Below the pieces are notes generated by a model that worked only from the letters and a program-made list of their open reading frames with translations, was not told the origin of the DNA and did not search any database. The position numbers and the translations under genes are program-made. Shown one piece after another: positions 5,910 to 64,000 of a stretch of 64,000 nt of DNA (the first letter of the stretch is position 1; each line of letters opens with the position of its first letter). The stretch spans positions 186,001 to 250,000 of the IMG/VR virus record IMGVR_UViG_3300025121_000011, one strand, 5' to 3'.

Positions 5910-6659
5910 ATGTATCAATTAACTGAATTATTAAATATTCTGAAGAGATCACACTCTGATTCTAGTGAGATTCGAAATATAATTCATAAGATAGCAACTC
6001 GACCATTACCTATACCATCCAAAGAGGAACTTCAGCCAACAGCAGATAAGATAATAGAATATATAGAGCATCAATTAAAAACTGTTCCAATATATTCTAG
6101 CATAATGCGCAATACTCAAAAGAAGCATTATAAAAGTTCTATTCCAATTGAAACATTAAAATTAAAAAATGTTAAAGATGATGAAATTAAAATAGATATT
6201 TTTTGGGCTTATACATCTGAAGACATGAAGGGATTTTTGGAAGAAATTTCTGATGAATATAAAAAAATATATATCTTTATAAGATCTGATATCCCAAAAA
6301 TAGAAGCCTTTAAAGATTTACGTAAACATATTATTGTTTCATTGGAACACGAAATAACTCATGCACTTGATATTCTTTCGCTATCAGATGAATATCTTTC
6401 TCTGGATGGTAAGCAAGATTTTATAGCATATGTAAATGATTCTGGAGAGATCAAAGCATTTATACGTACATTATATTCCGAAATACAAGAAGAGGTAAGA
6501 GAAAGAATAGATAATGGTGGATCATTGGGTTCGGCCATTATGCATGCGTTAAGTACAAACCTTGACTGGAAGCAAATTAAAAAATATGTGTCTGATAAAA
6601 ACAAAGCAGTTTTGTTAAAAGGATTAGTAACAGCCTTTCAAGATGAAGGTTTAATGTAG
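5910..6659 (+). CDS. HExxH zincin-like metallopeptidase-domain protein with loose match to the shared leader
   Basis: SLEHEITHALD followed by YVNDSGEIKAF (downstream Glu ligand); N-terminus QLTELLNILKRSH. Confidence 0.6.
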   Translation: MYQLTELLNILKRSHSDSSEIRNIIHKIATRPLPIPSKEELQPTADKIIEYIEHQLKTVPIYSSIMRNTQKKHYKSSIPIETLKLKNVKDDEIKIDIFWAYTSEDMKGFLEEISDEYKKIYIFIRSDIPKIEAFKDLRKHIIVSLEHEITHALDILSLSDEYLSLDGKQDFIAYVNDSGEIKAFIRTLYSEIQEEVRERIDNGGSLGSAIMHALSTNLDWKQIKKYVSDKNKAVLLKGLVTAFQDEGLM

Positions 6660-6668
6660 GAGATAATT

Positions 6669-6863
6669 ATGTCATTTAAAAAAACTGGAGAGATTAAAGT
6701 TTATCGAAAAGATAAAGAAGGCATATCTAAGAAAGCCGGAAAAGAGAGTCCTGCGAGATATACCGTAGATGATTTGGTAGATGAATCTGAAGCTGGATAC
6801 GATCCTTATGAGGAAGAAGATTGGGATCTGGAAATATCACCAAAAGAACAAGCAGAATCATAA
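6669..6863 (+). CDS. Small hypothetical protein (basic N-terminus, acidic C-terminus)
   Basis: 64-aa ORF with a GGAG RBS, in operon context. Confidence 0.55.
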   Translation: MSFKKTGEIKVYRKDKEGISKKAGKESPARYTVDDLVDESEAGYDPYEEEDWDLEISPKEQAES

Positions 6864-6900
6864 TTTCATCCAACCTTTAAGAATGTGATTGGAGAATATA

Positions 6901-7311
6901 ATGTGGGATAAAATAAAAATACTTTCTAATGTTTTAAAACGTTTTGGATTAGCCAAAGATGTAGATGCACTATTAGAATCTGAAGGATTTTCTGAAGATA
7001 TACATATTTTATTTTTAAAACAGGGAGGAAAAAAAGATCATCTTTTATCCTTATTTCATCATTTACATCATTCAATAAGTGATAGAAAAATAGAACACGA
7101 AGTTCATCATTGTGGTGGGAAACATAAAGGTAAAGATATAAATTATACTATATCTCATTGTTCTCATAATAAACATAGAATAGATAAAGAAGATGCCATC
7201 GGACATGGCACAACACACGGAGATGATCTTTTAGCAGTTAAAATTCATTTTACGGAAAAATGTTCTGATGGTGGTTGGCACATAGAAAGCGGAAAAATAA
7301 AAGATGATTAA
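6901..7311 (+). CDS. His-rich hypothetical protein with the shared leader motif
   Basis: ATG 6901 behind GGAG; KIKILSNVLKRFGLAKDVDALL; many His and several Cys in the C-terminal half. Confidence 0.6.
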   Translation: MWDKIKILSNVLKRFGLAKDVDALLESEGFSEDIHILFLKQGGKKDHLLSLFHHLHHSISDRKIEHEVHHCGGKHKGKDINYTISHCSHNKHRIDKEDAIGHGTTHGDDLLAVKIHFTEKCSDGGWHIESGKIKDD

Positions 7312-8080
7312 TGAATATGAAGCTATTTGCAGTAAAATAAACAACTATGATTGGCATCCAAGTTATGATTCTTTTGAGAATAAAGTATATTCATTAAATA
7401 TTGCTATTACTCAAGATCTTGATAAAATTGTTAATAAAATAACTGTAAATAAACAAGAAATTCATTTAGCTTATTCGGGTGGAGTAGATTCTACAATTAT
7501 TTTATTTAAGCTTTTAAAATATAATATTCCAATTTTTGCTCATACAATTGCTTCGAGTGAAAATCATTTTGATTTTATATATGCAAAAAAAGTGTTATCT
7601 TCTTCTAATATATTATCAAGCGTTAAACATATACCTCATATTTTATCTGTGAAAGAAGATGATCTTATAGAGTCTAACAATATTTTAGAATCAAATGATA
7701 AAAGACCAGATAATTATTATTATTTAATGCGATCTATATTGCATTATACTCAATCAGTTATTAATTGCGATATAATAGATGAACTACTTGGTGGATATTA
7801 TTTGCATTATGGACCGAATATTCCAATGTTTTATGATTGTTTAAATAAGTTAATAAAAGATCATTTATATATTTTAAATAAGATTTCTACACATTTTAAT
7901 ATAGAAGTGTTTCTTCCATATGGTGGAGATAATTTTATGCATAAATGTGAATCTTTTTCTTTTGATGAATTGGTCGGAATAAATCAGCGAAAAAAGCCTG
8001 TATATGAAATCGCAAAATTATGTAATATTCCAGAATATATAATGGAGCGCAAAAAAATGGGATTAGTTTCTGCTTTATAA
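7304..8080 (+). CDS. Asparagine synthetase C-terminal-like PP-loop ATPase (no glutaminase domain)
   Basis: LAYSGGVDST PP-loop, DELLGGY, RKKPVYE, ERKKMG. Confidence 0.7.
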   Translation: MINEYEAICSKINNYDWHPSYDSFENKVYSLNIAITQDLDKIVNKITVNKQEIHLAYSGGVDSTIILFKLLKYNIPIFAHTIASSENHFDFIYAKKVLSSSNILSSVKHIPHILSVKEDDLIESNNILESNDKRPDNYYYLMRSILHYTQSVINCDIIDELLGGYYLHYGPNIPMFYDCLNKLIKDHLYILNKISTHFNIEVFLPYGGDNFMHKCESFSFDELVGINQRKKPVYEIAKLCNIPEYIMERKKMGLVSAL

Positions 8081-8099
8081 AATAGAGGTATATAAGTTT

Positions 8100-8606
8100 A
8101 TGTTAAATAAACTACAAAATTTAGAATATGCTCTTTTGTCTTATGGTCTTGCAAAAGAGGCACGTTTTGTGAATTTATTAAATAGAAATATATCCACCGC
8201 TTCTTCTATTGCCGATTCAACGGAGCGTGCAATTCACACGCCATTTAATTCAGAAAAACTAATAGCAACAGATGGCATAAGAATACCTTTTGGTGATTTT
8301 AATGAACCATGGGAAGTGTTTATATTAGAAGGCGACAACTATTCTGGAGTCAGAGCGGGCAGAATACTATTGGGATATCAAGATGAACCAGCTGGAGGAA
8401 TCAAGTGGTTTGAGGAGGATGGTAGACCAGTAATAACTCATTATTTTCTTGATGAAGATTTAAGAGGCAAAAAAGTTATTTCTCAATTGCTAGAAATTTA
8501 TAAAAAGTATGTTTCGGATCGTATTATTATAACTGGTCCATTTTCAGAGCAGGGAAAAGCGGTGGCGGATAAAAAGGCAGATGAAATTGTAGATTATAAA
8601 TATTAA
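8100..8606 (+). CDS. GNAT-like acetyltransferase-domain protein with the shared leader motif
   Basis: ITHYFLDEDLRGKKVISQLL resembles GNAT motif A; N-terminus KLQNLEYALLSYGLAKEARFVNLL. Confidence 0.5.
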   Translation: MLNKLQNLEYALLSYGLAKEARFVNLLNRNISTASSIADSTERAIHTPFNSEKLIATDGIRIPFGDFNEPWEVFILEGDNYSGVRAGRILLGYQDEPAGGIKWFEEDGRPVITHYFLDEDLRGKKVISQLLEIYKKYVSDRIIITGPFSEQGKAVADKKADEIVDYKY

Positions 8607-8615
8607 TGAGGTCAA

Positions 8616-9563
8616 ATGAAGATTGCCATTTTAACATTTAATTATGGATATGCTGGGAAAGTTGTTAATGGTCCTGGCATGTGCTTGGCTAACTTTGTCA
8701 AATTTTTAAACCAAGTAATACCCAGTATAGAAGTAGAAGTTTTTACGCAACTAACACCAATCAAACCGATACCAAATGTGCATTCTATAAGTAATAATAA
8801 GCTCTTATCTAAGACTATTAAATATGTAGACCTCGTACATCATTGGAGCGGAATTACACCGGAGTTAGTTCGAGCAGTTATATATGCAAATCAATTGCAA
8901 AAGAAAGTCATCATCGGTCCAAATGTTTTAGATACTGTAGAGTTTGAAAAAGAAAAAGGATTTCTAAGGAAAGTAGCTTTTGAAAAAATATTAACAGCAA
9001 ATAATCGATTATCTTTTAAGATTTCCAAAGAACATAATATTCCGATAAATAAAGTAATTTCATTTCAAGTTGGACCAGATTTAGACTTATGGACTCCCTC
9101 GGCAGAAAGAGATGGCACAATTCTCTGGAAGGGAAATAGTAAACAATTTGTAAAAGATGTAGATTTTGCTAAAAGAATAGAAAGTAAAATAGGAAATAAA
9201 TATACTTTTAAATTTATTGGATATCCTAATCCTTATGATTATTATAATCATATTGCCGAAGCTCGATTATCTAAGATGACTATAACAACATCACTTAGTG
9301 AAACCATGAATCTTTCTCAGTTAGAATCTTGGAGTTCTGGAATACCATCAGTAAGTCATCCAAAAATTTATATGCATGGAAAAAATTATCAAACAGGCAT
9401 TATAACTAATAAAACTATTGATGAATATATAGATGCAATTAATGAAATTATGCAAAATGAACAACTCTATCAATATTTATCTTTAGGTTGTAGACAATAT
9501 ATTTTAGATGAATTTTCTGCAAGTAAAACTGTAGAGAAGTATTTACAAATTATTAGCAATTAA
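8616..9563 (+). CDS. Glycosyltransferase, GT-B fold (GT4-like)
   Basis: VIIGPN, GPDLDLWTP, TSLSETMNLSQLESWSSGIPSVS (Ex7E-type motif), C-terminal EFSASKTVEKY. Confidence 0.75.
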   Translation: MKIAILTFNYGYAGKVVNGPGMCLANFVKFLNQVIPSIEVEVFTQLTPIKPIPNVHSISNNKLLSKTIKYVDLVHHWSGITPELVRAVIYANQLQKKVIIGPNVLDTVEFEKEKGFLRKVAFEKILTANNRLSFKISKEHNIPINKVISFQVGPDLDLWTPSAERDGTILWKGNSKQFVKDVDFAKRIESKIGNKYTFKFIGYPNPYDYYNHIAEARLSKMTITTSLSETMNLSQLESWSSGIPSVSHPKIYMHGKNYQTGIITNKTIDEYIDAINEIMQNEQLYQYLSLGCRQYILDEFSASKTVEKYLQIISN

Positions 9564-11599
9564 TGAGAAAGCCAATGAAAAATATTTTTGGAAAATTGAC
9601 TAAATTAGCAAATGTTTTGTATAAACTTGGTCAAAAAAAAGAAAGTATATATGTTATACTTTTAAGATCATCATTTTTTAAAAGTGCCGTTACTTTATAT
9701 CATGGTGGTTTAGTAGAAAATAAAGATAGTATACAACATAGTGGATTAATACCACAAGTTGGTCCATGGGTAGAAGAGGTTTTAAGTGGTGCAACTGATC
9801 AAGATATTGATTTTGATGAACATGGTTTAGTTTTTGCAGCAGATAAGCATAGATTTGATATGGCGGTATATGCTATGTTATGGCATATAGCAAATAAACT
9901 TGGTAAAAGTGCAAATAATATTACACCAGAAGAAATCATTAAATATGGATTATTAGTTATAATTAAAGAAGGTGAATCTTCATTTGTAAAGCGACCAAAA
10001 GATGATATGCAATGGTATAAAATGCAAGAGGAAATTAGTTATGATACAGGCAACCCCTTGTGGGCAGTTGAACCAGAAGATTGGTTCTCTACGGAAGGAT
10101 CTGATGCGGATATTTTATTAACTGGAAATAAATTATTAAGTTATATCACAAGAAGAGGAGCCTATCCACTCAAGGGATCTATGACTGCCGGTTATGATAA
10201 ATGGTTGCGACAAGAATATATTAAACAAAAAAAGAAGGATCCTCAGCAACATTTGTTTCCTGAATCCACAGAAGATTTACAAAAGAGATTATCTGATATG
10301 TCAGAATCAGAAATCAAAAAAGAGTTGGATGCAATCAAAGCATCTATAAAGTGTACATCAGCCTATGATACTCCATTTTTAAAACAACTCGATGATTCTG
10401 GGCGTTATGATATAGAGTTAGATCCTGATAATACTATTGAACACTTGGAAACCTATCGCTATAAGCCAAAAGGTATTGAACACTGGAATGAAGATAGTAG
10501 GCATCTTACAGATCCCAATTCAGGAAAAACCTTTAAAAGCCGTCCCATTAGATGGGATCCTGAAATTACAGATGTAACAACAATTGAAGATGAGTGGGGT
10601 AAAGATTTTAAGGATCAGTTAAAAGAGGGCTGGTTAGACAAATTGCCTCAAAATCCAAATTTAATATATCGTGGAATGTCATGGGAGGAATATCAATTTA
10701 TACTTAAAACAAATAATATTCAATCATTGGGAGATTATAATTTAGGTGATGAACAAATTGGATTAACTTATTTTAGTACAGATCCAAATAGTGCAGCTTA
10801 TTATGCTCATAGTTTTGCCCCAACTCAATATAAAGCTACACCAGAAAAACCCGCCTATGTAGTTGCTGTTCCCAAAAGAGATGGAGTACCTGTAGCTGGA
10901 ACTGGAGAGCATGAGGTTGGTGTGCGAGGACCGATACCCGCTAATGAAGTTGTTGAAGTTTGGGAAGGGATGCCGTATTATATGACCGCCGGTGGTTCAT
11001 TGGATATTATTAATGACTGGGGCGGTCGTAGAGAAGGGTCTAGAGTATCTCCATTGATAAGTGTGGCATGGAGAAAAATAATTCCTTCTTTAAAAACTAA
11101 AGCTTCTATTCTAAAAACTTTTAATAAACATGAAATAGAAGATGAAGATTTATTAGAATCTAAATCCACAGAAACATCTTCAAAAACTATATTAGAGAGA
11201 GCCATAGAGTATTTTGGACTAACTTATAGCGCAAGAGCAGCTGGTTACATTCTGCCGGATGGCAGGCTTTTGGATTTCTCGGAAAAGACTGGAGAAAGAA
11301 TCTCAGATCATCGAGAGGTAGGATTTTTAGTAGAGGAATATGGACCTTTTGAATATGAATCTGATGCTATGGATAGATTTATGAAGGAAACAGGTTGTAT
11401 AAGATTAGGAGTTTATAATAGATATATGCAGATAGATGCTCAAACAGTACCAACTGAAAAACAAATGAAGACAATACAGTCTATTATAAAAAGATATAAT
11501 ATAGAAGGAGCATCTGTTATAAAGCCCGGCAGAATTTCAGATGAAGAAATAGATTTTCCAACGGCTAATCAAATTTTTAAAATTTTAACAAGTAATTAA
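9563..11599 (+). CDS. Multidomain protein: shared leader, two ADP-ribosyltransferase-like domains and a C-terminal GYILPDG domain
   Basis: TLYHGG...GLIP...VFAA; LIYRGMS...YFSTD...AYYA...EHEVGVRGPIP (R-S-E-type ART pattern); AGYILPDGRLLDFS...DHREV. Confidence 0.55.
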   Translation: MRKPMKNIFGKLTKLANVLYKLGQKKESIYVILLRSSFFKSAVTLYHGGLVENKDSIQHSGLIPQVGPWVEEVLSGATDQDIDFDEHGLVFAADKHRFDMAVYAMLWHIANKLGKSANNITPEEIIKYGLLVIIKEGESSFVKRPKDDMQWYKMQEEISYDTGNPLWAVEPEDWFSTEGSDADILLTGNKLLSYITRRGAYPLKGSMTAGYDKWLRQEYIKQKKKDPQQHLFPESTEDLQKRLSDMSESEIKKELDAIKASIKCTSAYDTPFLKQLDDSGRYDIELDPDNTIEHLETYRYKPKGIEHWNEDSRHLTDPNSGKTFKSRPIRWDPEITDVTTIEDEWGKDFKDQLKEGWLDKLPQNPNLIYRGMSWEEYQFILKTNNIQSLGDYNLGDEQIGLTYFSTDPNSAAYYAHSFAPTQYKATPEKPAYVVAVPKRDGVPVAGTGEHEVGVRGPIPANEVVEVWEGMPYYMTAGGSLDIINDWGGRREGSRVSPLISVAWRKIIPSLKTKASILKTFNKHEIEDEDLLESKSTETSSKTILERAIEYFGLTYSARAAGYILPDGRLLDFSEKTGERISDHREVGFLVEEYGPFEYESDAMDRFMKETGCIRLGVYNRYMQIDAQTVPTEKQMKTIQSIIKRYNIEGASVIKPGRISDEEIDFPTANQIFKILTSN

Positions 11600-11609
11600 T
11601 TGAGGATAA

Positions 11610-12359
11610 ATGAAGGTTGATATAATAATACCAGCTTATAATCCGGGTTCATACTTAAAAGATGCTTTAGATAGCTGTTTGGCTCAAACATATAAAAATT
11701 ATCAGATTTATGTAATTGATGATTGCTCTACAGAAAATATTAAAAGTGTAACAAACGACTACCCTAATATTTGTTATATTAGAACGCCACATCATCTAGG
11801 ACCGGGAGGTACCAGAAATTATGGTATCGCCAATGGAAGTGGAGAATTACTTAGCTTCTTAGATGCAGATGATATGTGGGAACCAAAGAAGCTAGAATGG
11901 AGCGTAACGGAGTTTGAAAAAGATAAATCTATAGCGATGACCTGTGGGAATTATCGTAGACTAGAAGATAGAAAAAGACTTTGTAATCCATTTTATCGTC
12001 ATCCGCCCATTATAACCTGGCAGAATTTGATGAGGGTGAACCTTGTTGCATGTGGAAGTGTTACTCTGCTTAGAAGTATATTTGAAAAAATAGGAGGATT
12101 TTCAGAAAAAATCTGGATTTGTGAAGATTATAACTTATGGCTAAAAGTTTCTGAACAATATAAAATTAAGTATGTTGATCAGGTATTATATCTCTACAGT
12201 GTAATTAAAGATGGAAAATCTTTAACGAATCAGCAATCACTTCAGATTGCTCATAAAGGTGTTGGTGATATAATTAGAAGAGAGTCAATGGAGAGAGTAA
12301 ATGCACTTAAGCAACTTGAAGCCAAATCAAACAATTTTAATAAAAACATATTTACATGA
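11610..12359 (+). CDS. Glycosyltransferase family 2 (GT-A)
   Basis: IIIPAYN, VIDDCST, GGTRNYG, FLDADD (DxD), EDYNLWLKV. Confidence 0.9.
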   Translation: MKVDIIIPAYNPGSYLKDALDSCLAQTYKNYQIYVIDDCSTENIKSVTNDYPNICYIRTPHHLGPGGTRNYGIANGSGELLSFLDADDMWEPKKLEWSVTEFEKDKSIAMTCGNYRRLEDRKRLCNPFYRHPPIITWQNLMRVNLVACGSVTLLRSIFEKIGGFSEKIWICEDYNLWLKVSEQYKIKYVDQVLYLYSVIKDGKSLTNQQSLQIAHKGVGDIIRRESMERVNALKQLEAKSNNFNKNIFT

Positions 12360-14773: not shown

Positions 14774-14787
14774 TGTTTGAAATTGTA

Positions 14788-14794
14788 TATTAAT
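14788..14794 (+). promoter_or_regulatory. TAYTAAT element (putative late promoter)
   Basis: TATTAAT 17 nt upstream of ATG 14812. Confidence 0.35.
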
Positions 14795-14811
14795 TATTTA
14801 ATAATTGATAT

Positions 14812-17800: not shown

Positions 17801-18429
17801 AAGCTGCTGTCGATTCTTTTGTAAATAGTTTAGCGGGAGTAATTGTTTTAGAGGTTATGATTGATGGAGAATGGCAACTTGTATCTCAATCTTACTTCCA
17901 TTATGTTCCAAGGCAAAATATTTTTATTCTTGATAATATTGAAGCCGGAAAATGGTCTGAAAAGAATTCAACTTTAAAAAGTATAACTGGTTATAATTTT
18001 CCTGAAATTTATGCATTATTAGGGCAGCATTTAAAAGAAAAAGGATATCAAGATGTTCTGGTTGGAATAAATTATACAAAAGTTATTACAAGATCTGAAT
18101 TTAAAAGAGATAAGAGAGATACGGATCTACGAAGATTTAAAGTAGATGATCCATATACAGATTATGAACCAGAAGACTCTATTTCGCTTTCTAATCCTAA
18201 ATTTAAAATTGTACAAAGTAAGATAAAGAATTTTATTATAGATTGGGAAATTAATAAAACAGCGCAAATCAGTCGAGAACTTATACCTTGTTTATTCCCA
18301 AGTCAAAGAATTCAAAAAATTACGCAAATAAAAATTACACCACTTAAGAAGGCTCTTTTGTCTCTTGGGCTAAAGGCTGAGGTGCGGCAAATTAACAAAC
18401 TAATTGGTCTTTCACTATCTTCTAAATAA
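14812..18429 (+). CDS. Large (1205 aa) hypothetical protein; C-terminal GNAT/PcfJ-like domain and a C-terminal copy of the shared leader motif
   Basis: Mostly helical; VGADTDCCQMVGG...SQSYFHY...ILDNIEAG domain; ends KITPLKKALLSLGLKAEVRQINKL. Confidence 0.5.
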   Translation: MMESYSNLTKSLFHLENKMDREERQKKLINILKSSIDNNLNLPEDQIRESFSNTAFAFPYKLDTLENPGFIDEYIVTSEEIESYIEQYQKVANILENGLAKFLRLQEKVKAFMATNSLTKDIEPERLFKRIYRLDNYAKNLFMMFMLPTGGSYGYNKYLERSINKSSTSREDYLQKIERIEMDAIEIVRSIPSDIDDLVKIYDLNSEDELAEAIFYLSKSPKLIGVNRYINQNTPESFSPIAFEIHPQQMLEAGRKYKTLSLYGYEPQGPQGFPEFQSHTKKEKQYKYNPDLELPESDYRGKGFLINKFIDEQISNYFERYYEKTDKEIINATRDELQQRLVKSLNERVSSLEEMIQVYGFPEFLIKDIKSRIYSNDFGKLMSSGINTEKEYSDNSNEILIHSLITNGNFSALRYIIKLSESKNDNQAKDFFKKAIKEQVSDIDFRSEENAKVDILDIITEIDRKYGEKIRQQGLQAVFPYAWKAIFQIPTMYGLNFDIDTYAVSSRSGILGIISKIYKEKIRTALEEQAYGNGKKLKDTSTFKEIIFLSRIKHLGFSGYRKMNQYMDEEKENYEPFDKVSEEPNPKERARILNTLKDTVKDPENISEIYEAYDEYIKRYKDLSVPGLQEKKDIWNHFLLKVIGKLYRQEEAYITGKTNQLFDKFPDIIVPDLPAISWDKFLISSASFGCASTPITILKTLQDGIKTGLIPLFVKLSSVDEFNSIERMEGFLLKLVQIYNLYKNNRDIFNLRLVQPFPDLYKKITGTKEERIEKILQIANLLDNYQFKEEIVASKYIDKINLDIIKKAIKTYAEYKRAIKSIETENKDRSSDENEEEGEWVHDVWVPHESSESSNLKNTDFINVLIKNIQDIREKTKSSEDIFPKDMENILLSLPADISLDKFIDYFEINIGELSGSQAQLARAKLARLSYGLSIYGQISTVMEYYNEAEKKNSHLFDAEFSGKNFRFRVLRDLDPYHFQVGADTDCCQMVGGAGEQAAVDSFVNSLAGVIVLEVMIDGEWQLVSQSYFHYVPRQNIFILDNIEAGKWSEKNSTLKSITGYNFPEIYALLGQHLKEKGYQDVLVGINYTKVITRSEFKRDKRDTDLRRFKVDDPYTDYEPEDSISLSNPKFKIVQSKIKNFIIDWEINKTAQISRELIPCLFPSQRIQKITQIKITPLKKALLSLGLKAEVRQINKLIGLSLSSK

Positions 18430-20613: not shown

Positions 20614-22011
20614 TTATTCGACATTTTCCGGTTTGTTTGTAGATACTTCTGGGAATAATTCATCTATTTTAGGGCCAAAATCAAAAACTATAGCTTCTGC
20701 CTCAGCAGCGTCAACATCAAAGCGGGATGCCTGTTCTATCAACCATTTCTTTATTCTATCTCCAACACCAGGAGATGGACCCTTTCCTTTAAGAAAACCA
20801 TTAAAACCGTTTAGTAAAGATTTTTCTAGGTATTCAATAAACATATTTCTTTTGGTTTGTTCATCATCCATAGAACGCCTATCATCAAAATTTATAGATT
20901 TTGGTAAATCGATTGATGGAGGGACTTTAAGAAGTGGCCCAGCCTCTAGTTTGCGTCTGATAATACTAACATTAACCTGTGTAATATCATAATTAAGAGC
21001 TTTGGATAAATAATCGGCAATTAAAGTATCACTTAACCCATCTTTATATAGTTTCATAATAACATTTGCTATGTAAATTTTTAGATGTTTTTTAAGATCA
21101 GAAAGAGCTGCCATAAAAACTGTTTTTTTATTTTTTAGAGTAGAGTTGGGATATTTTTTGTCAAATATTTTCTCAATATCAGAAGCAGTTAAGGTGCCCT
21201 TACCAGTGGGACTGGTCAACTCTTTCATAATTAATTCAACAATAATTAGATTATAATCATTAGAGCTTTCCGCTTCAAATACCGATGCAGCTCTAATTGC
21301 GTTTGCAGGATCGAGTGGATTATGGGGATATTTCCTTTTAAAAACATTGATAATGTCTAGCGCTTTTACGACTTTGCCAGGATTAAGATTTTTGATATCT
21401 CTAGCGATTTGTAGGCATACAATTTCAATGTCCTCCTCGGATTTATTTTCCGCGTCAATAATATTTTTGTAATCTGGAGACATTTTTATAAATCTTATTG
21501 ATGTGGTTGATTTATAAAAGAATCCCCTTTCTTTTAATTTTAATAATATTTCTTGGTTAGAAATTTCTGGTTCTTCAGAAACCCAGTCCTTAACTATTTT
21601 CATAATTATGCTGCCAATTGCAGCGGTAATAATTTGACTGTTATGCTTTATTTTTTTAACTGTTTCGCTGAATACGGGGTTTTGTTTTAGTAGATGTGCA
21701 ATATATACAATTTGATTGGCATGAAAACCTTTAGGGCTAAAGTCATATCCGCTTATTGTAGAATAGTTTTTATTAAAATGCTTAAATATTAAATTAATAA
21801 TATTTTCTATATCATTTCTTGTTTCATCTGACATAGATTGTCTTCCCTCGCCAGATCTACGAGCTTTATCAGCCCCCTCGTCAGGACCATATTCAGATAA
21901 TAGTTTTGAGATATTAGCAGCGTGTGCCAACAATGTATCAACTTCATTGGCCTCTTTAATATACCCATGTTTCATTAAGGTTTCAGATAAAATTCTTAAA
22001 TCTATATACAT
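20614..22011 (-). CDS. Hypothetical protein with the shared leader motif
   Basis: 465 aa; starts MYIDLRILSETLMKHGYIKEANEVDTLL; internally repeated F.KKYP helical units. Confidence 0.65.
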   Translation of the reverse strand: MYIDLRILSETLMKHGYIKEANEVDTLLAHAANISKLLSEYGPDEGADKARRSGEGRQSMSDETRNDIENIINLIFKHFNKNYSTISGYDFSPKGFHANQIVYIAHLLKQNPVFSETVKKIKHNSQIITAAIGSIIMKIVKDWVSEEPEISNQEILLKLKERGFFYKSTTSIRFIKMSPDYKNIIDAENKSEEDIEIVCLQIARDIKNLNPGKVVKALDIINVFKRKYPHNPLDPANAIRAASVFEAESSNDYNLIIVELIMKELTSPTGKGTLTASDIEKIFDKKYPNSTLKNKKTVFMAALSDLKKHLKIYIANVIMKLYKDGLSDTLIADYLSKALNYDITQVNVSIIRRKLEAGPLLKVPPSIDLPKSINFDDRRSMDDEQTKRNMFIEYLEKSLLNGFNGFLKGKGPSPGVGDRIKKWLIEQASRFDVDAAEAEAIVFDFGPKIDELFPEVSTNKPENVE

Positions 22012-45299: not shown

Positions 45300-46118
45300 A
45301 TGGATAAACTTGCTGACTTATGTGAATATTTAAAAGAACATAAATATTATGAAGAAGCAGAATTCTTATTAAAATATATTAAGAAAGCAGGTTTATCTTT
45401 TGATATTATTAAAGAAGCAAAAAAATATCAGATTAAAAGTGGAGACACACCTTACACTTTATCCAAGGGAAATTATCAATATCAAAAAGCAATAGAAAAT
45501 GCTAATAAACAGATTAAAGATTGGTCAAAAATTCAAATAGATCAAGTAATTGAATTGCCTCCGATTGCTAAATCAGAAAATCCAAATAATGATGTAGTAT
45601 ATACTATTAAAGCAATAGCTTTAATTAAAAAAGTAGAAACAGAAGTTTTGTATACTTATCCAGACTTTGGATATAGAGCTTATGGATATGGTCACAGATA
45701 TGGTAAAATGGATGCTGGAGAAATAACTAGGTACAAACAAACTTTAACTAAACGAAATAAAATAGGTACTTCTGGATTTTTGACTGCTCGGGAATGTAAG
45801 TTTATTTTTGGAAAGAATTTTAAACAAATAGACTCTGGAACGGCAAATAAACTATTGCTTCAAGATATAAATATAGCATTGGGATGCATCAAGCGAAACA
45901 TAAAACATAAGCTTAACCAAAATCAAGTGGATGCATTAATTAGTATTATTTATAATACAGGTTGTGGAACTTTTGCTCAGTCTTCTTTATTAGATACTAT
46001 TAATGCGGGAAAATTAAACACAGCTGCTAAACTAATTCCTACAAGTTTTATTTTATCTGAAACTCATAAAGAAAGAAGAAAGTTTGAAGCAGAGTTATTT
46101 AGAACGGAACTTATATGA
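45300..46118 (+). CDS. LysM domain plus GH24 (T4-type) lysozyme with the shared leader motif
   Basis: YQIKSGDTPYTL...IQIDQVIELP (LysM); KVE...YPD...YGYGH, LNQNQVDALISIIYNTG, RRKFEAELF. Confidence 0.75.
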   Translation: MDKLADLCEYLKEHKYYEEAEFLLKYIKKAGLSFDIIKEAKKYQIKSGDTPYTLSKGNYQYQKAIENANKQIKDWSKIQIDQVIELPPIAKSENPNNDVVYTIKAIALIKKVETEVLYTYPDFGYRAYGYGHRYGKMDAGEITRYKQTLTKRNKIGTSGFLTARECKFIFGKNFKQIDSGTANKLLLQDINIALGCIKRNIKHKLNQNQVDALISIIYNTGCGTFAQSSLLDTINAGKLNTAAKLIPTSFILSETHKERRKFEAELFRTELI

Positions 46119-52874: not shown

Positions 52875-53111
52875 ATGATTAATAGATTAATTAAAATTGC
52901 AGATTTTTTAGACCGTTCTGGGCGCCAAGAAGATGCGGATTTTATGACTGGACTTCTCATAGCTTATAAAAAGGCGCAATCCGGTATAGATGGTATTAAT
53001 ATAGAATCAGATTACATACCTGAAAGTTTAGAAATTCCAGATGATGAATACGATCTTTTAATGGATGTATTTTCTTCTTTAGGTAAAAGTCTAAATAAGG
53101 ATGTTAAATAA
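52875..53111 (+). CDS. Small protein consisting of the shared leader motif plus an acidic tail
   Basis: MINRLIKIADFLDRSGRQEDADFMTGLLIAYKKAQ. Confidence 0.6.
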   Translation: MINRLIKIADFLDRSGRQEDADFMTGLLIAYKKAQSGIDGINIESDYIPESLEIPDDEYDLLMDVFSSLGKSLNKDVK

Positions 53112-54334: not shown

Positions 54335-54337
54335 GAG

Positions 54338-55450: not shown

Positions 55451-58400
55451 ATGAAATTAGTAATTGTAGAGTCTCCCAACAAATGTTCCAAGATAAAAAA
55501 AATCTTGGGAAGTAATTATCTTGTCATGGCCTCTGTTGGTCATATCATGGATTTATCAAAAGAAAAGAAAGATAAAACTTCAAGATTTTGGAACGGAATA
55601 GATTTGAGTACTTGGGATGTGAATTATAGTGTTAGTCCTGGAAAAAAAGATGTAGTAAGTAATTTAAAAGACGCTGCAAAAAAATGTGAAGAAATCTATA
55701 TCGCAACAGATGATGATCGCGAAGGAGAAGCTATAGCTTTTAATATATTAGATATTCTTCCTAAAAAAGGTATCAAAATACATCGAGTTATATTTAAGAC
55801 TATTACACAAAAGGATATTTTAGATGGTATTAAAAATCCTATTCCATTTAATGATAATCTATATGCAGCTCAACAAGCTAGACGAATCACAGATAGATTG
55901 GTAGGATTTAAAGTTAGTCCAATCATGTGGACAAAAGGTTTAAGAAAAACAAGCGCAGGAAGGGTGCAATCTGCCGCTCTTAAGTTTATTGTAGATAGAG
56001 AACGAGAGATTAGAGGTTTTAAACCAGAAGAATATTGGACTATTAAAGCCAAAACTGATTTAAAATTTGATGCTAGTTTTTATGGAATAGATTCTAAGAA
56101 ATATATTCCAAAAACAAAAAAGAAAGTAGATGAAATTTTAAAAGATTTATCAAAAGATATAACTGTTGCTTCTTATGTAACAAAACAAAGAGAGAGATCT
56201 CCAGAGCCGCCTTTTATTACAGCATCTATGCAAAAAGATGCTGGTAATAAATTTGGATGGACTGGTAAAAAAGTTATGGATATAGCACAGAATTTATTTT
56301 CAAGTGGGTTGATTACGTATCACCGTTGTTTCCCTGGGTATGTAAGAATATCTACATCTAAAGGTCTAATTCCTATTAGAGATATTAAGATAGGTGAAGG
56401 AGTTCATACTATCAATGGAATTAAAAACGTAACCGATATAGTTAAAAATAAGAATCGAGATATATTTAAACTAAACACCAAACACGGATATCAAATTTTC
56501 GGATCTAATAATGAACCATTTATGATTTATGATTGTGAGAATAGAGTGCCGGTTTGGAAAAGATTAGATAAATTGAGAGCCGGTGATCTAATAGCTCTTA
56601 GTGGGCAAGAAGGCTTTTCTGAGGTTAAAAATAATATCTTTGAATACACTTGTCCATTTGAATCAGAAATGGATTCAAATAACCTATTAACATGTAATAT
56701 TTGCAATAAAAAATTCAAGTCTTTGTCACCACATATCAAAAGATATCATAAGTTAACGGGCAAAGAATATGTTAAAAAATTCGGAAAAACAAACTTACAC
56801 ACAAACTCTGTAGAAAAATTTAATATTCCTAAAATAATGACTCCGGATTTGGCAAAAATATTAGGATATATATTATCCGAAGGGTGTATATCTAAGAACG
56901 GAAGAAATATTTTATTTTATAATAATTCCAGAGAGGTTTTGAATGATTTTGCGGTCTCTTTTAATAAAATATTTGGTACACAATACAGTCCAATGTATAA
57001 TTCTAATAAATTCGAAGTTAACTCAAAAAGAATAGTTTGCTTTTTGAGTTATTTGGGAATGAATAGTAAACTTTCAATAGAAAAAGAGATTCCACATATA
57101 ATATTTAAATCTGATTTAGAATCTAAAACTGCCTTTATTAAAGCATTTTGGGAAGGAGACGGAAGTTATGATTCAATCATTACTAATTCCGAAAAACTTA
57201 AAAATGATCTAAAATTATTACTTCTTTCTATCGGAATACCTACTGGATGCCATATTAATAGGGAGTACACTGGTTTTTCGATTGGAAATTCATCATATAA
57301 GGTTCAGCTTTCTGGATTTTATATTCAAAAGTTTTTTAATTTAATCGGAGAGCCGATTTCTAAGCACAGAATGGAGCAAAAAGAGAAATTACTAGAAAGA
57401 ACACCAAATGGACAGCATTGGTCAAATAATAAGTTAACAACCGATAATGTTATTTGGGATAAAGTTATTGATAGCTCCTATTCACATAAAGAGGATACCT
57501 GGGATCTTACTGTTGAAGAGCAGCATCATTATATTGCAGAAGGATTTATTGCTCACAATACTGATAGTATTCGGTCAGATCCAGCAAAAATAATTGATAT
57601 TAGAGATAGAATTGAAAAATTACATGGAAAACAATATTTATCTCCACAAACCAGAAAATATGCTTCAGGCGGAAATTCTCAAGATGCGCATGAAAGTATT
57701 AGACCTACTTTTGATACGGTTTCTGTATCATTAGGAACAGATGAACGAAAATTATTAGAATTAATTACTAATAGATTTATGTCCTCGCAAATGGCAGATG
57801 CCATATTTGACCAGGCTGCTGTTAGATTGGAAACAACGGGAAAAGATCACACATACGAGTTTCGCGCCAATGGATCAGTCCAAAGATTTGATGGTTTTTT
57901 AAAGGTATATGGAGCAGCATCAAAAGACAACGTTCTACCAGCATTAAAGAATGGACAAAAGATTGGGGTTGATAAGTATGAATCAAGTCAGCATCACACA
58001 GAAGCCCCCGCCAGATATACGGATCCCGGAACATTTACAGATAAGATGGAAAAGGAGGGTATCGGACGACCAGCTACTTATGCTTCTACAATGGATACTT
58101 TAATTGATCGCAACTATGTTGAGAGAGAAAAACAGAAAATTAAAGCTACAGAAGTAGGTATCATGGTTTCTGATTATTTAACGCATTTCTTTAAAAATGT
58201 TACTAGTTCTGCCTTTACAGCTACAATGGAAACAGAGCTTGATGAAATCGCTGAAGGCAAAAGACAATTTAAAACATCTATGGATACATTTTTTAATCAA
58301 TTAACATTAGAAGTAGACGCAGCCAAAACATCTAAAGTTCAAATATTTAAAACAGATATAGATTGTAGTAGTTGCAATGATGGAACTAAAATGATTAAAA

Positions 58401-58951
58401 AGATTTCTGATTTAGGTGTATTCTTAGGATGCGATAATTGGCCTAAGTGTGGACACACAGTTAATTTTGATACTGATGGAAATATGGTAAATGAAGAGGT
58501 GGATACAGGCTATGAATGTCCAATTTGTGGAAATATATTAGAAAAAAGAAAGGGACCATATGGAGAATACTATCGCTGTAAGGGCTCTGCTTGTAGTTTT
58601 ACAGGAAAAGAAAAAGATGGATCCGTAGTTGCTTCCGGAAAGTCTGCTTCTGTAGATCTGGGCGTTCCCTGTCCTAAATGTAAAAAAGGAACTTTGCTTA
58701 AAAGAGAAAGTGCGAAAGGCCCTTGGGTTGGATGTAGCGAGTTTAAAAATGGTTGTAAATTTACAGGTTCTATTGATGATTCTGGTAGTATTGTAGTTAA
58801 AAAGACACAGACAAAAACTTCTAGTGGGAAAACAACAAACGAATCATGCCCACTTTGTAAAACTGGAAAATTAATTGAAAGAAAATCTAAATTTGGTGCC
58901 GGAACTTGGTTAAGTTGTGATGGTTTCCCAAAGTGCAGATATAAGAAATAG
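55451..58951 (+). CDS. topA: DNA topoisomerase IA with C-terminal Zn-ribbon repeats, intein-containing
   Basis: LVIVESPNK, ASVGHIMDL, ATDDDREGEAI, ARRITDRLVG, SAGRVQS, ITYHR|TDS, HESIRPT, EGIGRPATY; four C4 ribbons. Confidence 0.93.
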   Translation: MKLVIVESPNKCSKIKKILGSNYLVMASVGHIMDLSKEKKDKTSRFWNGIDLSTWDVNYSVSPGKKDVVSNLKDAAKKCEEIYIATDDDREGEAIAFNILDILPKKGIKIHRVIFKTITQKDILDGIKNPIPFNDNLYAAQQARRITDRLVGFKVSPIMWTKGLRKTSAGRVQSAALKFIVDREREIRGFKPEEYWTIKAKTDLKFDASFYGIDSKKYIPKTKKKVDEILKDLSKDITVASYVTKQRERSPEPPFITASMQKDAGNKFGWTGKKVMDIAQNLFSSGLITYHRCFPGYVRISTSKGLIPIRDIKIGEGVHTINGIKNVTDIVKNKNRDIFKLNTKHGYQIFGSNNEPFMIYDCENRVPVWKRLDKLRAGDLIALSGQEGFSEVKNNIFEYTCPFESEMDSNNLLTCNICNKKFKSLSPHIKRYHKLTGKEYVKKFGKTNLHTNSVEKFNIPKIMTPDLAKILGYILSEGCISKNGRNILFYNNSREVLNDFAVSFNKIFGTQYSPMYNSNKFEVNSKRIVCFLSYLGMNSKLSIEKEIPHIIFKSDLESKTAFIKAFWEGDGSYDSIITNSEKLKNDLKLLLLSIGIPTGCHINREYTGFSIGNSSYKVQLSGFYIQKFFNLIGEPISKHRMEQKEKLLERTPNGQHWSNNKLTTDNVIWDKVIDSSYSHKEDTWDLTVEEQHHYIAEGFIAHNTDSIRSDPAKIIDIRDRIEKLHGKQYLSPQTRKYASGGNSQDAHESIRPTFDTVSVSLGTDERKLLELITNRFMSSQMADAIFDQAAVRLETTGKDHTYEFRANGSVQRFDGFLKVYGAASKDNVLPALKNGQKIGVDKYESSQHHTEAPARYTDPGTFTDKMEKEGIGRPATYASTMDTLIDRNYVEREKQKIKATEVGIMVSDYLTHFFKNVTSSAFTATMETELDEIAEGKRQFKTSMDTFFNQLTLEVDAAKTSKVQIFKTDIDCSSCNDGTKMIKKISDLGVFLGCDNWPKCGHTVNFDTDGNMVNEEVDTGYECPICGNILEKRKGPYGEYYRCKGSACSFTGKEKDGSVVASGKSASVDLGVPCPKCKKGTLLKRESAKGPWVGCSEFKNGCKFTGSIDDSGSIVVKKTQTKTSSGKTTNESCPLCKTGKLIERKSKFGAGTWLSCDGFPKCRYKK
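56327..57559 (+). mobile_element. Intein (411 aa) with LAGLIDADG endonuclease and a C2H2 zinc-finger insert in topA
   Basis: Begins CFPGYV, ends TWDLTVEEQHHYIAEGFIAHN followed by Thr; ILGYILSEG and FIKAFWEGDG; CNICNKKFKSLSPHIKRYH. Confidence 0.92.
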
Positions 58952-60094: not shown

Positions 60095-60118
60095 TAAAAT
60101 AAATAAAAATATGATTTA

Positions 60119-60451: not shown

Positions 60452-60453
60452 AA

Positions 60454-61202: not shown

Positions 61203-61208
61203 TATAAT

Positions 61209-61703
61209 TTAAGATAAAAAGCTATATGAACCCCAAGGAAGGATTTCTATTTTCTCATTCGGAAGTCTTGTCAGTTTTTCCGAAAAATACTTTAAAATTT
61301 CTGTTCTTAATGACAAGATTATATTTTGCATAGAATCTGAAGCGAGATTTCCTTCTACAAGGAGAATCATTGTGCCCGAAAGATTCTCTTTAGGTATATA
61401 CCAATAGATACTAACCTGAAAGTGAGCACCTTTTTGAATTGGAGTTTTATGTAAATTAATAAGACAACGAATATTGGAGGGGCTTGGTAAAACTTCTGAT
61501 GTTAATACCTCGGGAGTTAATACTTCTGGAATTAATACTTCTGGAATTAATACTTCTGGAATTAATACTTCTGGAATTAATACTTCGGGAATTTCAAGTT
61601 CTACTTCTTGATTTATATTTTCTTGGTTGATTTTATGTAAAGATTTAATAATGGTAAATGGTTCTGATTTTATAAATGGGTTGATTTTGTTAATTTTCCT
61701 CAT
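61209..61703 (-). CDS. Hypothetical protein with a (PEVLI)n low-complexity tract
   Basis: IPEVLIPEVLIPEVLIPEVLIPEVLTPEVLTSEVLP. Confidence 0.6.
   Translation of the reverse strand: MRKINKINPFIKSEPFTIIKSLHKINQENINQEVELEIPEVLIPEVLIPEVLIPEVLIPEVLTPEVLTSEVLPSPSNIRCLINLHKTPIQKGAHFQVSIYWYIPKENLSGTMILLVEGNLASDSMQNIILSLRTEILKYFSEKLTRLPNEKIEILPWGSYSFLS
61487..61593 (-). repeat. 15-bp coding tandem repeat (about 7 units)
   Basis: TTAATACTTCTGGAA units on the + strand, degenerate at both ends. Confidence 0.8.
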
Positions 61704-61724
61704 ATTAAATTGTCCTATAAATTA

Positions 61725-62849
61725 TTAAATTTTAAACACTCCAACATCTACCAGTTTTATCTCTCGATCTTTTTTTCCAATCATAATATTTTCTTCGTGT
61801 ACATCTTTCCATTTAATACCATAATCTTCTAAAATTCGCAAAAAATCCAGAAAAGATTGAAACTCTGAACTCGGATTATCTTCCGGTTCATTATAATGTA
61901 TTGGAAAAGGAGAAGAATATAAATCATAAAGGTCAAAATTATCATCTATATATATAATTATTTCTCTATATATTTTATCTGGAATATTTCCTTGATATAT
62001 TCCAGAATAGCTTAAGTAATTTTTAAGAAAAGAACGAAGCAAAGAATATGTCATTTCAAATGTATTTTTAGCATCAGTTAAACGTTTTAAAACTTCTCGT
62101 CTGGTGGGAACAACGATTTGTTTAGATAAACTTATTAATTGTTCATCTTTTGAATCTATTAAGATTTTCTGAATTTGGCGCTTAAATTCTTCTGGATGAT
62201 ATATAAGATTAACCATATCTGTTAAATTTCCTTTAAGCTCCCCAAAGCTAAAAGCCTTTTTTATAGAACTTGGAACGGGATCTAATTCTTCCATTAAGAT
62301 AATATAATATCGAATAGTGGTATTATATTTTTTAGATTCTACAGAACCGGTAAATGTACCATATATATTTGGAATATGTTTTTGTAATTCTGGAGCAATG
62401 TTTTGTGAAGCTTGTTGAATCGCCCTCCATACTTCTACATCTTGAGCTTCTCCCCACTCTAATTGTTTGCCATAAAACCCTATTTTTGCAGATACGGGTT
62501 TTCCTTCATATACAGCGGAATATACTGTAGCATATTTTCCAACTCCTAAAAATCCAGAATTATCTCCTCTGGTAACCGGAGTAATTCCATGTTGATGTAG
62601 AGCGGTAAGTTCTTCATCCTTCATAGACTCTGGAGGAATAGTTACATTTTTTAATAACTCTTCTTCAGATTCATATTTTTCAGGAAATTCTTTTACCGCT
62701 TCTTCATGCCAAGGCTCATCATATTCATCGGGTTCATCGGGTTCATTAGGTTCATCATATTCTGAAGCTAATGAATCAACTTCATTAGCATAAGATTTAA
62801 GATGCAATCGACTTAAAATACTAGATAATTTTAATAACCTATTTTTCAT
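61725..62849 (-). CDS. Ser/Thr protein kinase-like protein with the shared leader motif
   Basis: LGVGKYATVY Gly-loop, VSAKIG, IILMEEL, WKDVHEENIM catalytic loop, KLVDVG; N-terminus RLLKLSSILSRLHLKSYANEVDSL. Confidence 0.8.
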   Translation of the reverse strand: MKNRLLKLSSILSRLHLKSYANEVDSLASEYDEPNEPDEPDEYDEPWHEEAVKEFPEKYESEEELLKNVTIPPESMKDEELTALHQHGITPVTRGDNSGFLGVGKYATVYSAVYEGKPVSAKIGFYGKQLEWGEAQDVEVWRAIQQASQNIAPELQKHIPNIYGTFTGSVESKKYNTTIRYYIILMEELDPVPSSIKKAFSFGELKGNLTDMVNLIYHPEEFKRQIQKILIDSKDEQLISLSKQIVVPTRREVLKRLTDAKNTFEMTYSLLRSFLKNYLSYSGIYQGNIPDKIYREIIIYIDDNFDLYDLYSSPFPIHYNEPEDNPSSEFQSFLDFLRILEDYGIKWKDVHEENIMIGKKDREIKLVDVGVFKI

Positions 62850-62875
62850 TGTTCACCTTAAATATTTAATTTTAT

Positions 62876-62882
62876 ATTAATA
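62876..62882 (-). promoter_or_regulatory. TAYTAAT element (putative late promoter)
   Basis: ATTAATA on + (TATTAAT on -), 26 nt upstream of the start at 62849. Confidence 0.45.
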
Positions 62883-62897
62883 GTTATCAAGATTAGC

Positions 62898-62928
62898 AAA
62901 AAGGCAGTTCTCAAGAGCTGCCTTTTTT
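62898..62928 (-). terminator. Intrinsic terminator, potentially bidirectional
   Basis: AAAAA-GGCAGTTC-TCAA-GAGCTGCC-TTTTTT, immediately after the stop of 62935..63423(-). Confidence 0.8.
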
Positions 62929-62934
62929 AATTGA

Positions 62935-63423
62935 TTAACGGCATACTTTATCTGCTACTCCTGATGCGCACCAAGCTTCTGGTTTAATAGAGCATTCATA
63001 ACCTTGACTAGCAACAAGGCCAATTAACTCTACTTTAAAAGCAGATGTTTTAGACAGCTTTGGATTTGGTCCAATATCTAAGTGAATATGAATTGTCTTT
63101 TTAAAATCTGGTTCAATCTCCATAGCTGCTTCTAAAGAGCGATAAGCTTCTAGCATCATTCTCATCCTAAGATTAGGATAATCCTTTTTAAGTATTTTTT
63201 CTTTAACATAAAAAACCCGACCAGAACAATCTGATCCATACCTAGAGTTTCTTCTAACAAAAGCTATGCAGGTGGCGATATAGATTTTATTTTTAATTAC
63301 TTGAGAATCAGTGCCTATATAGGCATCATATCCTTCTGAATCATATTGTTTTAATATTTTAATAAATTCTTCATATGAATATTCAACTTGATTTAGATTT
63401 TTAATTTTTTGCTCTTTTAGCAT
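62935..63423 (-). CDS. RNase H-like (DUF458/YkuK-type) protein
   Basis: AYIGTDSQ, EAYRSL, IHLDIG, IKPEAWCASGVADK. Confidence 0.7.
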   Translation of the reverse strand: MLKEQKIKNLNQVEYSYEEFIKILKQYDSEGYDAYIGTDSQVIKNKIYIATCIAFVRRNSRYGSDCSGRVFYVKEKILKKDYPNLRMRMMLEAYRSLEAAMEIEPDFKKTIHIHLDIGPNPKLSKTSAFKVELIGLVASQGYECSIKPEAWCASGVADKVCR

Positions 63424-63527
63424 ATAAATTTGCCTCTGAATTTGCTATTAATATTTTATAGCAAGATAGACAGTATAATCACAGAAATATTTCATGAATC
63501 CACAACAATCTATGGGTGAATTGTTGA

Positions 63528-63809
63528 ATGAAAACCCCACACAACATACGATACCCAATCAATAATTCAGAAGCAATTCATTTTATACATATAACAAATA
63601 TACATTGGCTGAAGAGTCTTTCAATACCTGATAAAAGAAAACGTTGCAAAGAAACGCTACATATAATTAAAGAAGTACAATTTATATTAAATGAACTTAA
63701 AAAAGAGTTAGATAAATTAAAAAGAGAAAATAAAATAGATTTAGATATTTCAGAAGCATATTTAGTTATTTTAAAGTGGTATGCTACACATTGGAGACTT
63801 AAAAAGTGA
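63528..63809 (+). CDS. Hypothetical protein
   Basis: 93-aa ORF. Confidence 0.4.
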   Translation: MKTPHNIRYPINNSEAIHFIHITNIHWLKSLSIPDKRKRCKETLHIIKEVQFILNELKKELDKLKRENKIDLDISEAYLVILKWYATHWRLKK

Positions 63810-63865
63810 AACTAAATTCTGCTAAAAGATTGTATAAACTCGGAATTTATTTATTCGATCAAGCT

Positions 63866-64000
63866 ATGAATCAAGAACTTTTATCTTTAGTTAAAATTGC
63901 AAAAGAAAGTTCTGGAGAAATGCCGGGTTTAGAATTAATTGAAGCATCTACTGAAATCAAAACTTATTTAAGTAACTATGTTAATAATTTTGATGATCCT
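63866..64000 (+). CDS. Partial ORF running off the window, with a leader-like N-terminus
   Basis: MNQELLSLVKIAKESSGEMPGLELIEASTEIKTLLSNYVNNFDDP..., open to the window end. Confidence 0.5.
   Translation, partial: MNQELLSLVKIAKESSGEMPGLELIEASTEIKTYLSNYVNNFDDP

Follow-up and report, generated by a model that had tools for sequence, protein, structure and literature searches.

Otherwise unrelated proteins encoded in a 64,000-nucleotide stretch of viral DNA (positions 186,001 to 250,000 of IMG/VR record IMGVR_UViG_3300025121_000011; hereafter, the window) carry a similar short segment, usually close to the N terminus. A first-pass annotation had listed eight such segments and proposed that they load injected effectors into the phage capsid. 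Here, we find that the window segments appear to be divergent copies of an unannotated, virus-restricted module of ∼28 to 30 residues that is far more widespread than the eight copies first listed. The module's existence, portability, N-terminal preference, protein-level selection, occurrence in multiple copies, absence from cellular genomes, and predicted hairpin are established. We favor the interpretation, with a probability of roughly 0.55, that it serves as a portable docking or co-assembly tag.

The family outside the window was recovered by searching 1.84 billion representative proteins with a profile built from 12 sequences (profile A2), which returned 93 proteins at E ≤ 1e-3 in two groups. 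One group consisted of ∼33 cellular multirepeat proteins of the tetratricopeptide repeat (TPR) families TPR_10, TPR_12, and TPR_1, matched at profile positions 3 to 19 alone. The other consisted of ∼58 metagenomic proteins of 33 to 597 amino acids that matched the full profile, most of them at residues 3 to 31. The 79 motif instances in this second group align without gaps to the consensus KKLIKLANHLDSKGLKKEADYLDSIIKKAA (written out, M-I-x-E-LIKLANxLDxxGLxKEADyLDxIIKKA), with a usual start at residue 3. A DNA pattern back-translated from the core found 19 IMG/VR loci, on contigs of up to 332 kb; this pattern and a looser second one gave 0 matches in 185,579 bacterial and archaeal species genomes. 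When the fetched loci were scanned with a hidden Markov model (HMM) built solely from family members found outside the window (external-only HMM), 94 significant copies were detected. Carrier genes can be dense (13 in the 13.7-kb locus L014, ∼12 in L033/L034, and 6 in L029), and their neighbors include genes for a gpA-type terminase, RecA, DnaG-type primase, GroEL, DnaJ, iron superoxide dismutase (Fe-SOD), a tRNA synthetase, and a poly(A)-polymerase-like protein; these are large tailed phages. Pfam and PHROG scans of the window carriers and 89 external carriers assigned the tag to no family, a weak phrog_27110 match being the sole trace, and a consensus-string search of the full-text literature returned no description of it. 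A tblastn search of 50,697 cultured phage genomes with the window tags and a canonical tag also returned nothing, although such short queries are insensitive and this is weak evidence of absence. By these searches, the tag appears to constitute a large, previously undescribed, virus-only family that is absent from cellular genomes.

All eight peptides of the first-pass annotation were present in the window where it had placed them and on the strands it gave. Their positions are as follows (carriers are named below by the start coordinate of the gene, followed by a minus sign for the minus strand).

52881..52967, plus strand: hairpin tag, residues 3-31 of a 78-amino-acid protein (52875-53111); best window member of the canonical family
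21919..22005, minus strand: hairpin tag, residues 3-31 of a 465-amino-acid ORFan (20614-22011, minus strand)
9590..9673, plus strand: hairpin tag, residues 10-37 of a 678-amino-acid multidomain protein (9563-11599), or residues 6-33 if the start is 9575
8106..8189, plus strand: hairpin tag, residues 3-30 of a 168-amino-acid protein (8100-8606) with a weak GNAT-like body
62757..62843, minus strand: hairpin tag, residues 3-31 of a 374-amino-acid kinase-like protein (61725-62849, minus strand), followed by an acidic linker
6907..6987, plus strand: probable hairpin tag, residues 7-33 of the product of 6889-7311 (residues 3-29 if counted from the called start, 6901), with a His-rich body
45303..45383, plus strand: possible degenerate hairpin, residues 2-28 of a LysM-lysozyme (45300-46118)
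18328..18414, plus strand: motif-like segment and putative member, residues 1173-1201 of a 1,205-amino-acid protein (14812-18429)

Seven of the eight segments begin 2 to 6 residues past the likely initiator Met. Gene callers place the start at an internal Met in two carriers (6901 and 9575), and with the called starts, all but one of the seven N-terminal window copies begin at residue 2 or 3, which is the register of the wider family. The alignment of the segments had been described as gap free; in a MAFFT alignment (A1), 6889 and 45300 required a gap of 2 residues close to the end. An HMM of all eight, run over the six-frame translation, returned just those eight at 30 to 40 bits (next hit, 6.8 bits), but this outcome is circular. 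In leave-one-out tests, 8100 (18.4 bits; E = 4e-5), 6889 (15.8 bits; E = 3.6e-4), and 22011- (14.7 bits) were each recovered at rank 1 with E ≤ 4e-4, and 9563 (E = 0.06) and 62849- (E = 0.17) also ranked first. The copies in 45300 and 52875 and at the C terminus of 14812-18429 (2.6 bits; rank 15) were not recovered.

The external-only HMM avoids this dependence on the window. It scored 52875 at 20.2 bits (E = 7e-6), 22011- at 13.9 bits (E = 7e-4), and 9563 at 12.7 bits (E = 1.4e-3), and it scored the tag of P0006, an ortholog of 8100, at 26.3 bits; these copies thus belong with the LANxLD hairpin family. Twenty residue shuffles of the translation peaked at 2 to 10 bits, and the motif was distinguished from shuffled sequence in its core copies. 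With the same model, 6889 gave no score, and 45300, 62849-, and the C terminus of 14812-18429 had no significant one, the last lying at noise level. An iterative HMM search at E ≤ 1e-3 gathered 52875 alone from the window.

Plain BLASTP matched the 52875 tag to dozens of canonical tags, the 9563 tag to that of P0088 (E = 0.004), and the 62849- tag to the canonical tags of P0068 and P0095 (E = 0.002 to 0.003); the 62849- tag also scored 14.7 bits (E = 1e-3) when left out of the HMM training set. The 52875 tag is kept in orthologs P0002, P0003, P0068, P0090, and P0092. A homolog of 9563 in L011 (2069-3577) has the two large domains in reverse order with the tag still first; this homolog contains an in-frame stop at 3194-3196. 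We therefore regard five window copies as statistically supported on sequence grounds, namely 52875, 22011-, 9563, 8100 (via its ortholog), and 62849-. The 6889 copy appears moderately supported (its score falls to 5.7 bits with a stricter training set), and 45300 and the C terminus of 14812-18429 seem to fit the pattern alone, without statistical support. For 45300, the ortholog in the syntenic 420-kb phage L039 begins MKKLEGLYQYLREEGLHKEARLLFSFL, in which the canonical GLHKEA core is retained (6.3 bits; E = 0.16), and on this one comparison it is plausibly a degenerate copy below significance. Two looser matches that the first-pass annotation had added did not hold up: 5910 scored ∼2 to 3.6 bits (E = 3 to 5), and 63866 fell outside the top 50 hits.

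Further motif-like segments were observed below significance. The 1,205-amino-acid protein contains ERIEKILQIANLLDNYQFKEE at residues ∼770 to 800, and L039 encodes at 17610-17906 a ∼30-amino-acid tag-only open reading frame (ORF), MEKLSHLASFLKKAHYPSYIELVKLL, about where the window has its kinase-like carrier. In the same phage as the window, 4.5 to 6.9 kb past its end, L008 encodes an Fe-SOD with a canonical-type hairpin at its N terminus (14503-15201) and, next to it, a 408-amino-acid acidic protein with an internal canonical copy (15210-16436; 37 bits). These two canonical-type copies just outside the window show that the window phage belongs to the carrier group and that most of its copies are merely more divergent.

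Across the wider family, placement of the tag is strongly N terminal. A copy lies within the first 12 residues in 102 of 119 distinct carriers, and it starts exactly at residue 3 in 79 of them. Most carriers hold one copy (88 of 119), with two copies in 24 and three in 7, often far apart; among the 31 multicopy carriers are some tandem pairs and some tag-linker-tag proteins, and tag-only ORFs of 33 to 51 amino acids also occur in the family. The tag is portable: after tag masking, 62 carriers resolved into 56 BLAST clusters, and the arrays contained a single related pair. Past the tag, conservation fades after K-K-A-[AS]-E.

Codon usage indicates where selection acts. First and second codon positions are conserved in the tags and third positions are free, with Leu encoded by all six codons and a pairwise third-position identity of 0.41 versus an amino acid identity of 0.55. 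These free synonymous sites imply a constraint on the protein rather than on the DNA, and a DNA-level element was rejected on this basis. Tags are barely more alike within a genome than between genomes (0.575 versus 0.54), and divergence at synonymous sites is the same in both comparisons. Because this effect is very small and synonymous divergence does not differ, we rejected gene conversion or concerted evolution among the tags of a genome; the pattern instead suggests one conserved partner or self-pairing, and the constraint on the tag is common to all these phages.

The predicted structure of the module comes from P0027, a 67-amino-acid protein with two tags. An AlphaFold2 model built on a 7-sequence alignment has four helices (residues 2-14, 18-30, 35-48, and 52-66; predicted local distance difference test [pLDDT], 87.8; predicted template modeling score [pTM], 0.72), which implies that each tag is predicted to form a helix-turn-helix hairpin; the pTM accords with packing of the two hairpins against each other. 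Helix A (LIKLANxLD) is basic and hydrophobic, helix B (KEADxLDxhI) is acidic, and a Gly turn joins them. In the AlphaFold2 model of the 8100 protein, helices span residues 2-14 and 18-33 at low confidence (pLDDT, 48), and the model is too poor to judge whether the body is GNAT-like.

The cargos joined to the tag share no evident theme. BLASTP found no similarity among the window carriers, in agreement with their description as unrelated in the first-pass annotation. Its more specific cargo assignments fared unevenly. The lysozyme domain of 45300 is clear (Phage_lysozyme; Pfam E = 2e-17) and its LysM domain weak (Pfam E = 0.006); the kinase assignment of 62849- corresponds to a subthreshold Pkinase match (E = 0.0024) in the catalytic-loop region alone, and the GNAT assignment of 8100 is likewise subthreshold (E = 0.034). 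No database support was found for an ART-like domain in 9563, and the protein with the HExxH motif is 5910, which is not a carrier. PDB searches with 9563, 62849-, and 8100 returned nothing significant, searches for homologs of 52875 and 8100 returned a few close orthologs and no more, and the body of 22011- had no homolog among 5.8 billion clusters. Cargo annotations in the wider family were single cases (methyltransferase, PilZ, DUF5872, DUF5591, LysM, and dockerin or EF-hand-like segments), and no structural PHROG was found among the carrier cargos.

A charge-complementary hairpin that is conserved across phages, independent of its cargo, sometimes present in multiple copies, and predicted to pack against a second copy fits a docking tag. 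In the mechanism that we propose, a hairpin would form a small helical bundle by pairing either with a second hairpin or with a single conserved surface on a partner. Single-tag proteins would then be clients, and proteins with two or three tags could act as bridges or scaffolds. Many unrelated tagged proteins might in this way be gathered into one complex or place during infection; the destination could be the prohead core, a site near the membrane, or a zone of replication or assembly.

Several observations weigh against this proposal. Almost no cargo has a known function, and the set therefore reveals no shared pathway. The strict register at Met+2 suggests that a free N terminus or cotranslational recognition matters, for which plain oligomerization has no need. 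The P0027 bundle, modeled from its 7-sequence alignment, is intramolecular, and the common partner is one that we infer and is hypothetical. In the ortholog pair of 8100 and P0006, the tag is ∼33% identical and the whole protein 61 to 63% identical, so that the tag appears to evolve faster than the body. Moreover, the window copies are far more divergent than the canonical family, and with two of the eight unsupported, some may be in decay or serve another purpose.

The capsid role proposed by the first-pass annotation is the best surviving alternative to a docking tag, and we regard it as doubtful. Here, the hairpin would be a leader that binds the scaffold, core, portal, or inner shell, and tagged enzymes would be packaged and injected with the DNA, as happens with the internal proteins of T4 and with Alt. 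T4 capsid-targeting sequences (CTSs) are N-terminal propeptides of 10 to 20 residues that bind the core, are removed by the prohead protease gp21, and suffice to load foreign proteins into heads (PMC5694885), and huge phages package many proteins (PMC5694885). The tag resembles these leaders in being short, N terminal, portable, and attached to enzyme-like cargos (lysozyme, a kinase-like protein, and the Fe-SOD just outside the window). A network of hairpins would also suit a scaffolding core, in which multitag proteins could serve as scaffold, and a polyvalent-type gene (MPTase-PolyVal) lies nearby in the same genome, although it lacks the tag. This 290-amino-acid gene, at L038 17559-18431, combines ArdcN and the MPTase-PolyVal metallopeptidase of polyvalent proteins.

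However, no head, scaffold, virion, or ejection family was matched by 89 carriers in Pfam and PHROG scans, and the T4 IPI, IPII, and IPIII leaders (AF158101) scored nothing with three motif HMMs. Past the tag, no cleavage motif is clearly conserved: [ASG]xE occurred in 30 of 97 sequences, compared to 21 ± 3.7 in shuffled ones, and [LI]xE in 5 of 97. Of 157 copies in total (102 N terminal, 13 C terminal, and 42 internal), 55 (35%) are thus internal or C terminal, and together with the 31 of 119 carriers that have two or three copies, these are a poor fit to a simple cleaved leader. The carriers with a membrane-type helix directly past the tag (∼12) also argue against packaging, as does gene context: window carriers 6889, 8100, and 9563 lie within a sugar-modification gene cluster, and the 52875 ortholog in syntenic L039 is not beside structural genes. 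A single hint of a T7-type scaffold, in P0066, was not confirmed: it falls below the Pfam cutoff and its locus has no adjacent portal- or capsid-annotated gene. What the first-pass annotation described is therefore real as a portable, mainly N-terminal helix-turn-helix on unrelated proteins encoded on both strands, whereas no supporting evidence emerged for a capsid or injected-effector role. In its most general form, which we likewise hold to be improbable, the idea would make the hairpin an address label used by a large clade of uncultured huge phages to load dozens of proteins per genome into the prohead core, via tag-tag or tag-scaffold bundles, for coinjection. If that were true, the label would be a natural modular protein-delivery tag with a cargo range far beyond that of the T4 CTS.

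Anchoring at or near a membrane is less probable still. The hairpin would tether proteins to the inner membrane on its cytoplasmic side or to a membrane-bound phage complex, which would accord with the lysozyme and LysM protein among the carriers and with the ∼12 carriers in which a hydrophobic membrane-type helix begins within ∼20 residues of the tag, with Lys or Arg between. Against this idea, ∼105 of the 119 carriers have no membrane-type segment, the hairpin, which is highly charged, does not itself constitute an amphipathic helix lying in the membrane plane, and many cargos resemble soluble enzymes. We give marginally less credence to an N-terminal control element, that is, a degron or timing signal recognized by a protease, chaperone, or translation factor so that a class of proteins is stabilized or removed together. 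The strictness of the Met+2 register favors such an element, as do the DnaJ and GroEL encoded by carrier phages and a Trypsin_2 protease gene in the window, but the internal and C-terminal copies and the tag-linker-tag proteins are hard to account for, and degrons are usually unstructured, in contrast to the stable hairpin predicted here. It is very improbable that N-terminal amphipathic helices look alike by chance or that a nucleic acid element (DNA or RNA) lies at the 5′ ends of the genes, and this reading is refuted for the core set: two of the eight copies in the window, like the two looser matches, cannot be told from noise, but external-only E values reach 7e-6 against shuffle maxima of 2 to 10 bits, 93 database matches fall below 1e-3, mostly at residue 3, and synonymous sites are free.

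The window derives from an uncultured huge bacteriophage. Proteins identical to its own were found on metagenomic contigs of 305 to 352 kb and on one 335-kb IMG/VR contig. No near cultured phage was found, the best match being 64% identity over 24% of a 6.5-kb probe, and searches for related loci with single window carriers returned the same phage alone. G+C content is 31%, and nearly all genes lie on the plus strand. Shine-Dalgarno sites of the GGAG type precede many window genes (GGAG itself in 22 of 66). Annotated genes and the coordinates used for intein comparisons are as follows.

Replication and nucleotide genes of the window: thymidine kinase, dUTPase, class II ribonucleotide reductase, topoisomerase IA, and DnaB-like helicase
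Further window genes: PIN-PhoH, prkA-DUF444-spoVR, a sugar-modification cluster, and a Trypsin_2 protease gene
3723-5867, 37045-39699, 40781-43546, and 55451-58951: intein-bearing window genes
306-2684 and 10343-12580 of L039: regions for the topoisomerase and PhoH intein comparison

Inteins with a LAGLIDADG signature interrupt the GDP-mannose dehydratase, SpoVR, ribonucleotide reductase, and topoisomerase IA. In the syntenic L039, the topoisomerase has no intein (745 amino acids), and PhoH carries a LAGLIDADG insert (792 versus 440 amino acids). The glycan and sugar-modification cluster (window 1-13344 and L006 1-10000) encodes several GT1 and GT2 glycosyltransferases and methyltransferases, along with a sulfatase, a sulfotransferase, an NTP-transferase, a UDP-glucose dehydrogenase, and a GDP-mannose dehydratase. 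Three DUF7487 paralogs, 37 to 40% identical (25697-27304, 29964-31913, and 35020-36630), alternate with the phage-borne trio prkA, DUF444 (yeaH-like), and spoVR (28042-29952, 33840-35036, and 37045-39699). Beside 52875, a 1,249-amino-acid tail-fiber-like protein (48683-52432) and two more ORFs (53111-55312) have a G+C of 0.34 to 0.37 versus ∼0.31; the tail-fiber-like block is missing from the otherwise syntenic L039 and so looks like an inserted block. ARAGORN called a tRNA-Ile (anticodon TAT) at 23838-23927, entirely within the ORF at 23757-24092, and one of the two calls may be wrong. A 164-amino-acid product (61209-61703, minus strand) has a perfect fivefold PEVLI tandem repeat close to its N terminus. 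Downstream in the same genome, two small Ribosomal_L12-like ORFs (L038 11989-12252 and 14748-14990) lack the hairpin, as does the MPTase-PolyVal gene.

If the tag does bring unrelated proteins to one place, a large part of viral dark matter would become accessible: a common partner or destination could serve to sort dozens of genes per genome that otherwise defy annotation. It could also point to an organizing principle of huge-phage infection not seen so far, be it a set of packaged effectors, a hub for assembly, or a compartment. The consensus is sharp, and carriers in metagenomes can be cataloged at once. A compact, self-contained hairpin that tolerates any cargo is, in addition, potentially useful as a fusion tag.

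Comparison with known folds places the module near, but outside, several families of small helical units. Foldseek searches of PDB and BFVD with the P0027 model returned nothing below E = 0.39; the best superpositions were designed helical bundles (TM score, 0.62 to 0.66), followed by many TPR proteins (∼0.4 to 0.5), none of them significant, so that the two-copy model is nearer compact designed bundles than TPR proteins. When PDB sequences were searched with the motif profile, no match fell below E = 0.49. The tag resembles a TPR unit (TPR_10/TPR_12) in its helix-turn-helix and in the pattern L-x-x-L-A-N-x-L-x-x-x-G-x-x-x-E-A, and the cross-match of the profile to the ∼33 TPR proteins spans helix A and the turn and extends into the beginning of helix B. 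Unlike TPRs, it occurs as one to three isolated units rather than arrays of at least three, and its helix B (KEADxLDxhI) differs; no TPR family was matched by the 89 external carriers at E ≤ 1e-3 or by the window carriers at E ≤ 10. LisH (PF08513) is a eukaryotic, usually N-terminal helix-turn-helix of ∼30 residues, two of which form a four-helix bundle, and the tag shares its hydrophobic pattern and its Gly turn followed by an aromatic or aliphatic residue. LisH was absent from Pfam scans of the window and external carriers even at E = 10, although HMMER filters drop most weak hits and no direct profile comparison was run.

Functionally, the closest parallels would be tags that bring diverse enzymes inside a protein shell. 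The encapsulation peptides of bacterial microcompartments and the cargo-loading peptides of encapsulins are short terminal tags of cellular systems, either single helices or C terminal, and the coat-binding domain of the P22 scaffolding protein is a C-terminal helix-turn-helix hairpin able to load fused cargo. Like the hairpin, these are short, terminal, and helical and are joined by linkers to their cargos; the hairpin has no sequence relation to any of them. The CTSs of T4 (IPI, IPII, IPIII, and Alt) are likewise short portable tags on otherwise unrelated proteins of one phage, and their N-terminal placement is shared by 7 of 8 window copies and 102 of 119 external carriers, with a start no later than residue 12. 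They differ in sequence (MKTYQEFIAE in IPII and IPIII, compared to a two-helix hairpin of 28 to 30 residues) and in being cleaved, whereas the hairpin also occurs internally and in multiple copies, with no clearly conserved cleavage site after it. The tag would work like known terminal targeting or docking tags, yet it is a distinct family with an architecture of its own.

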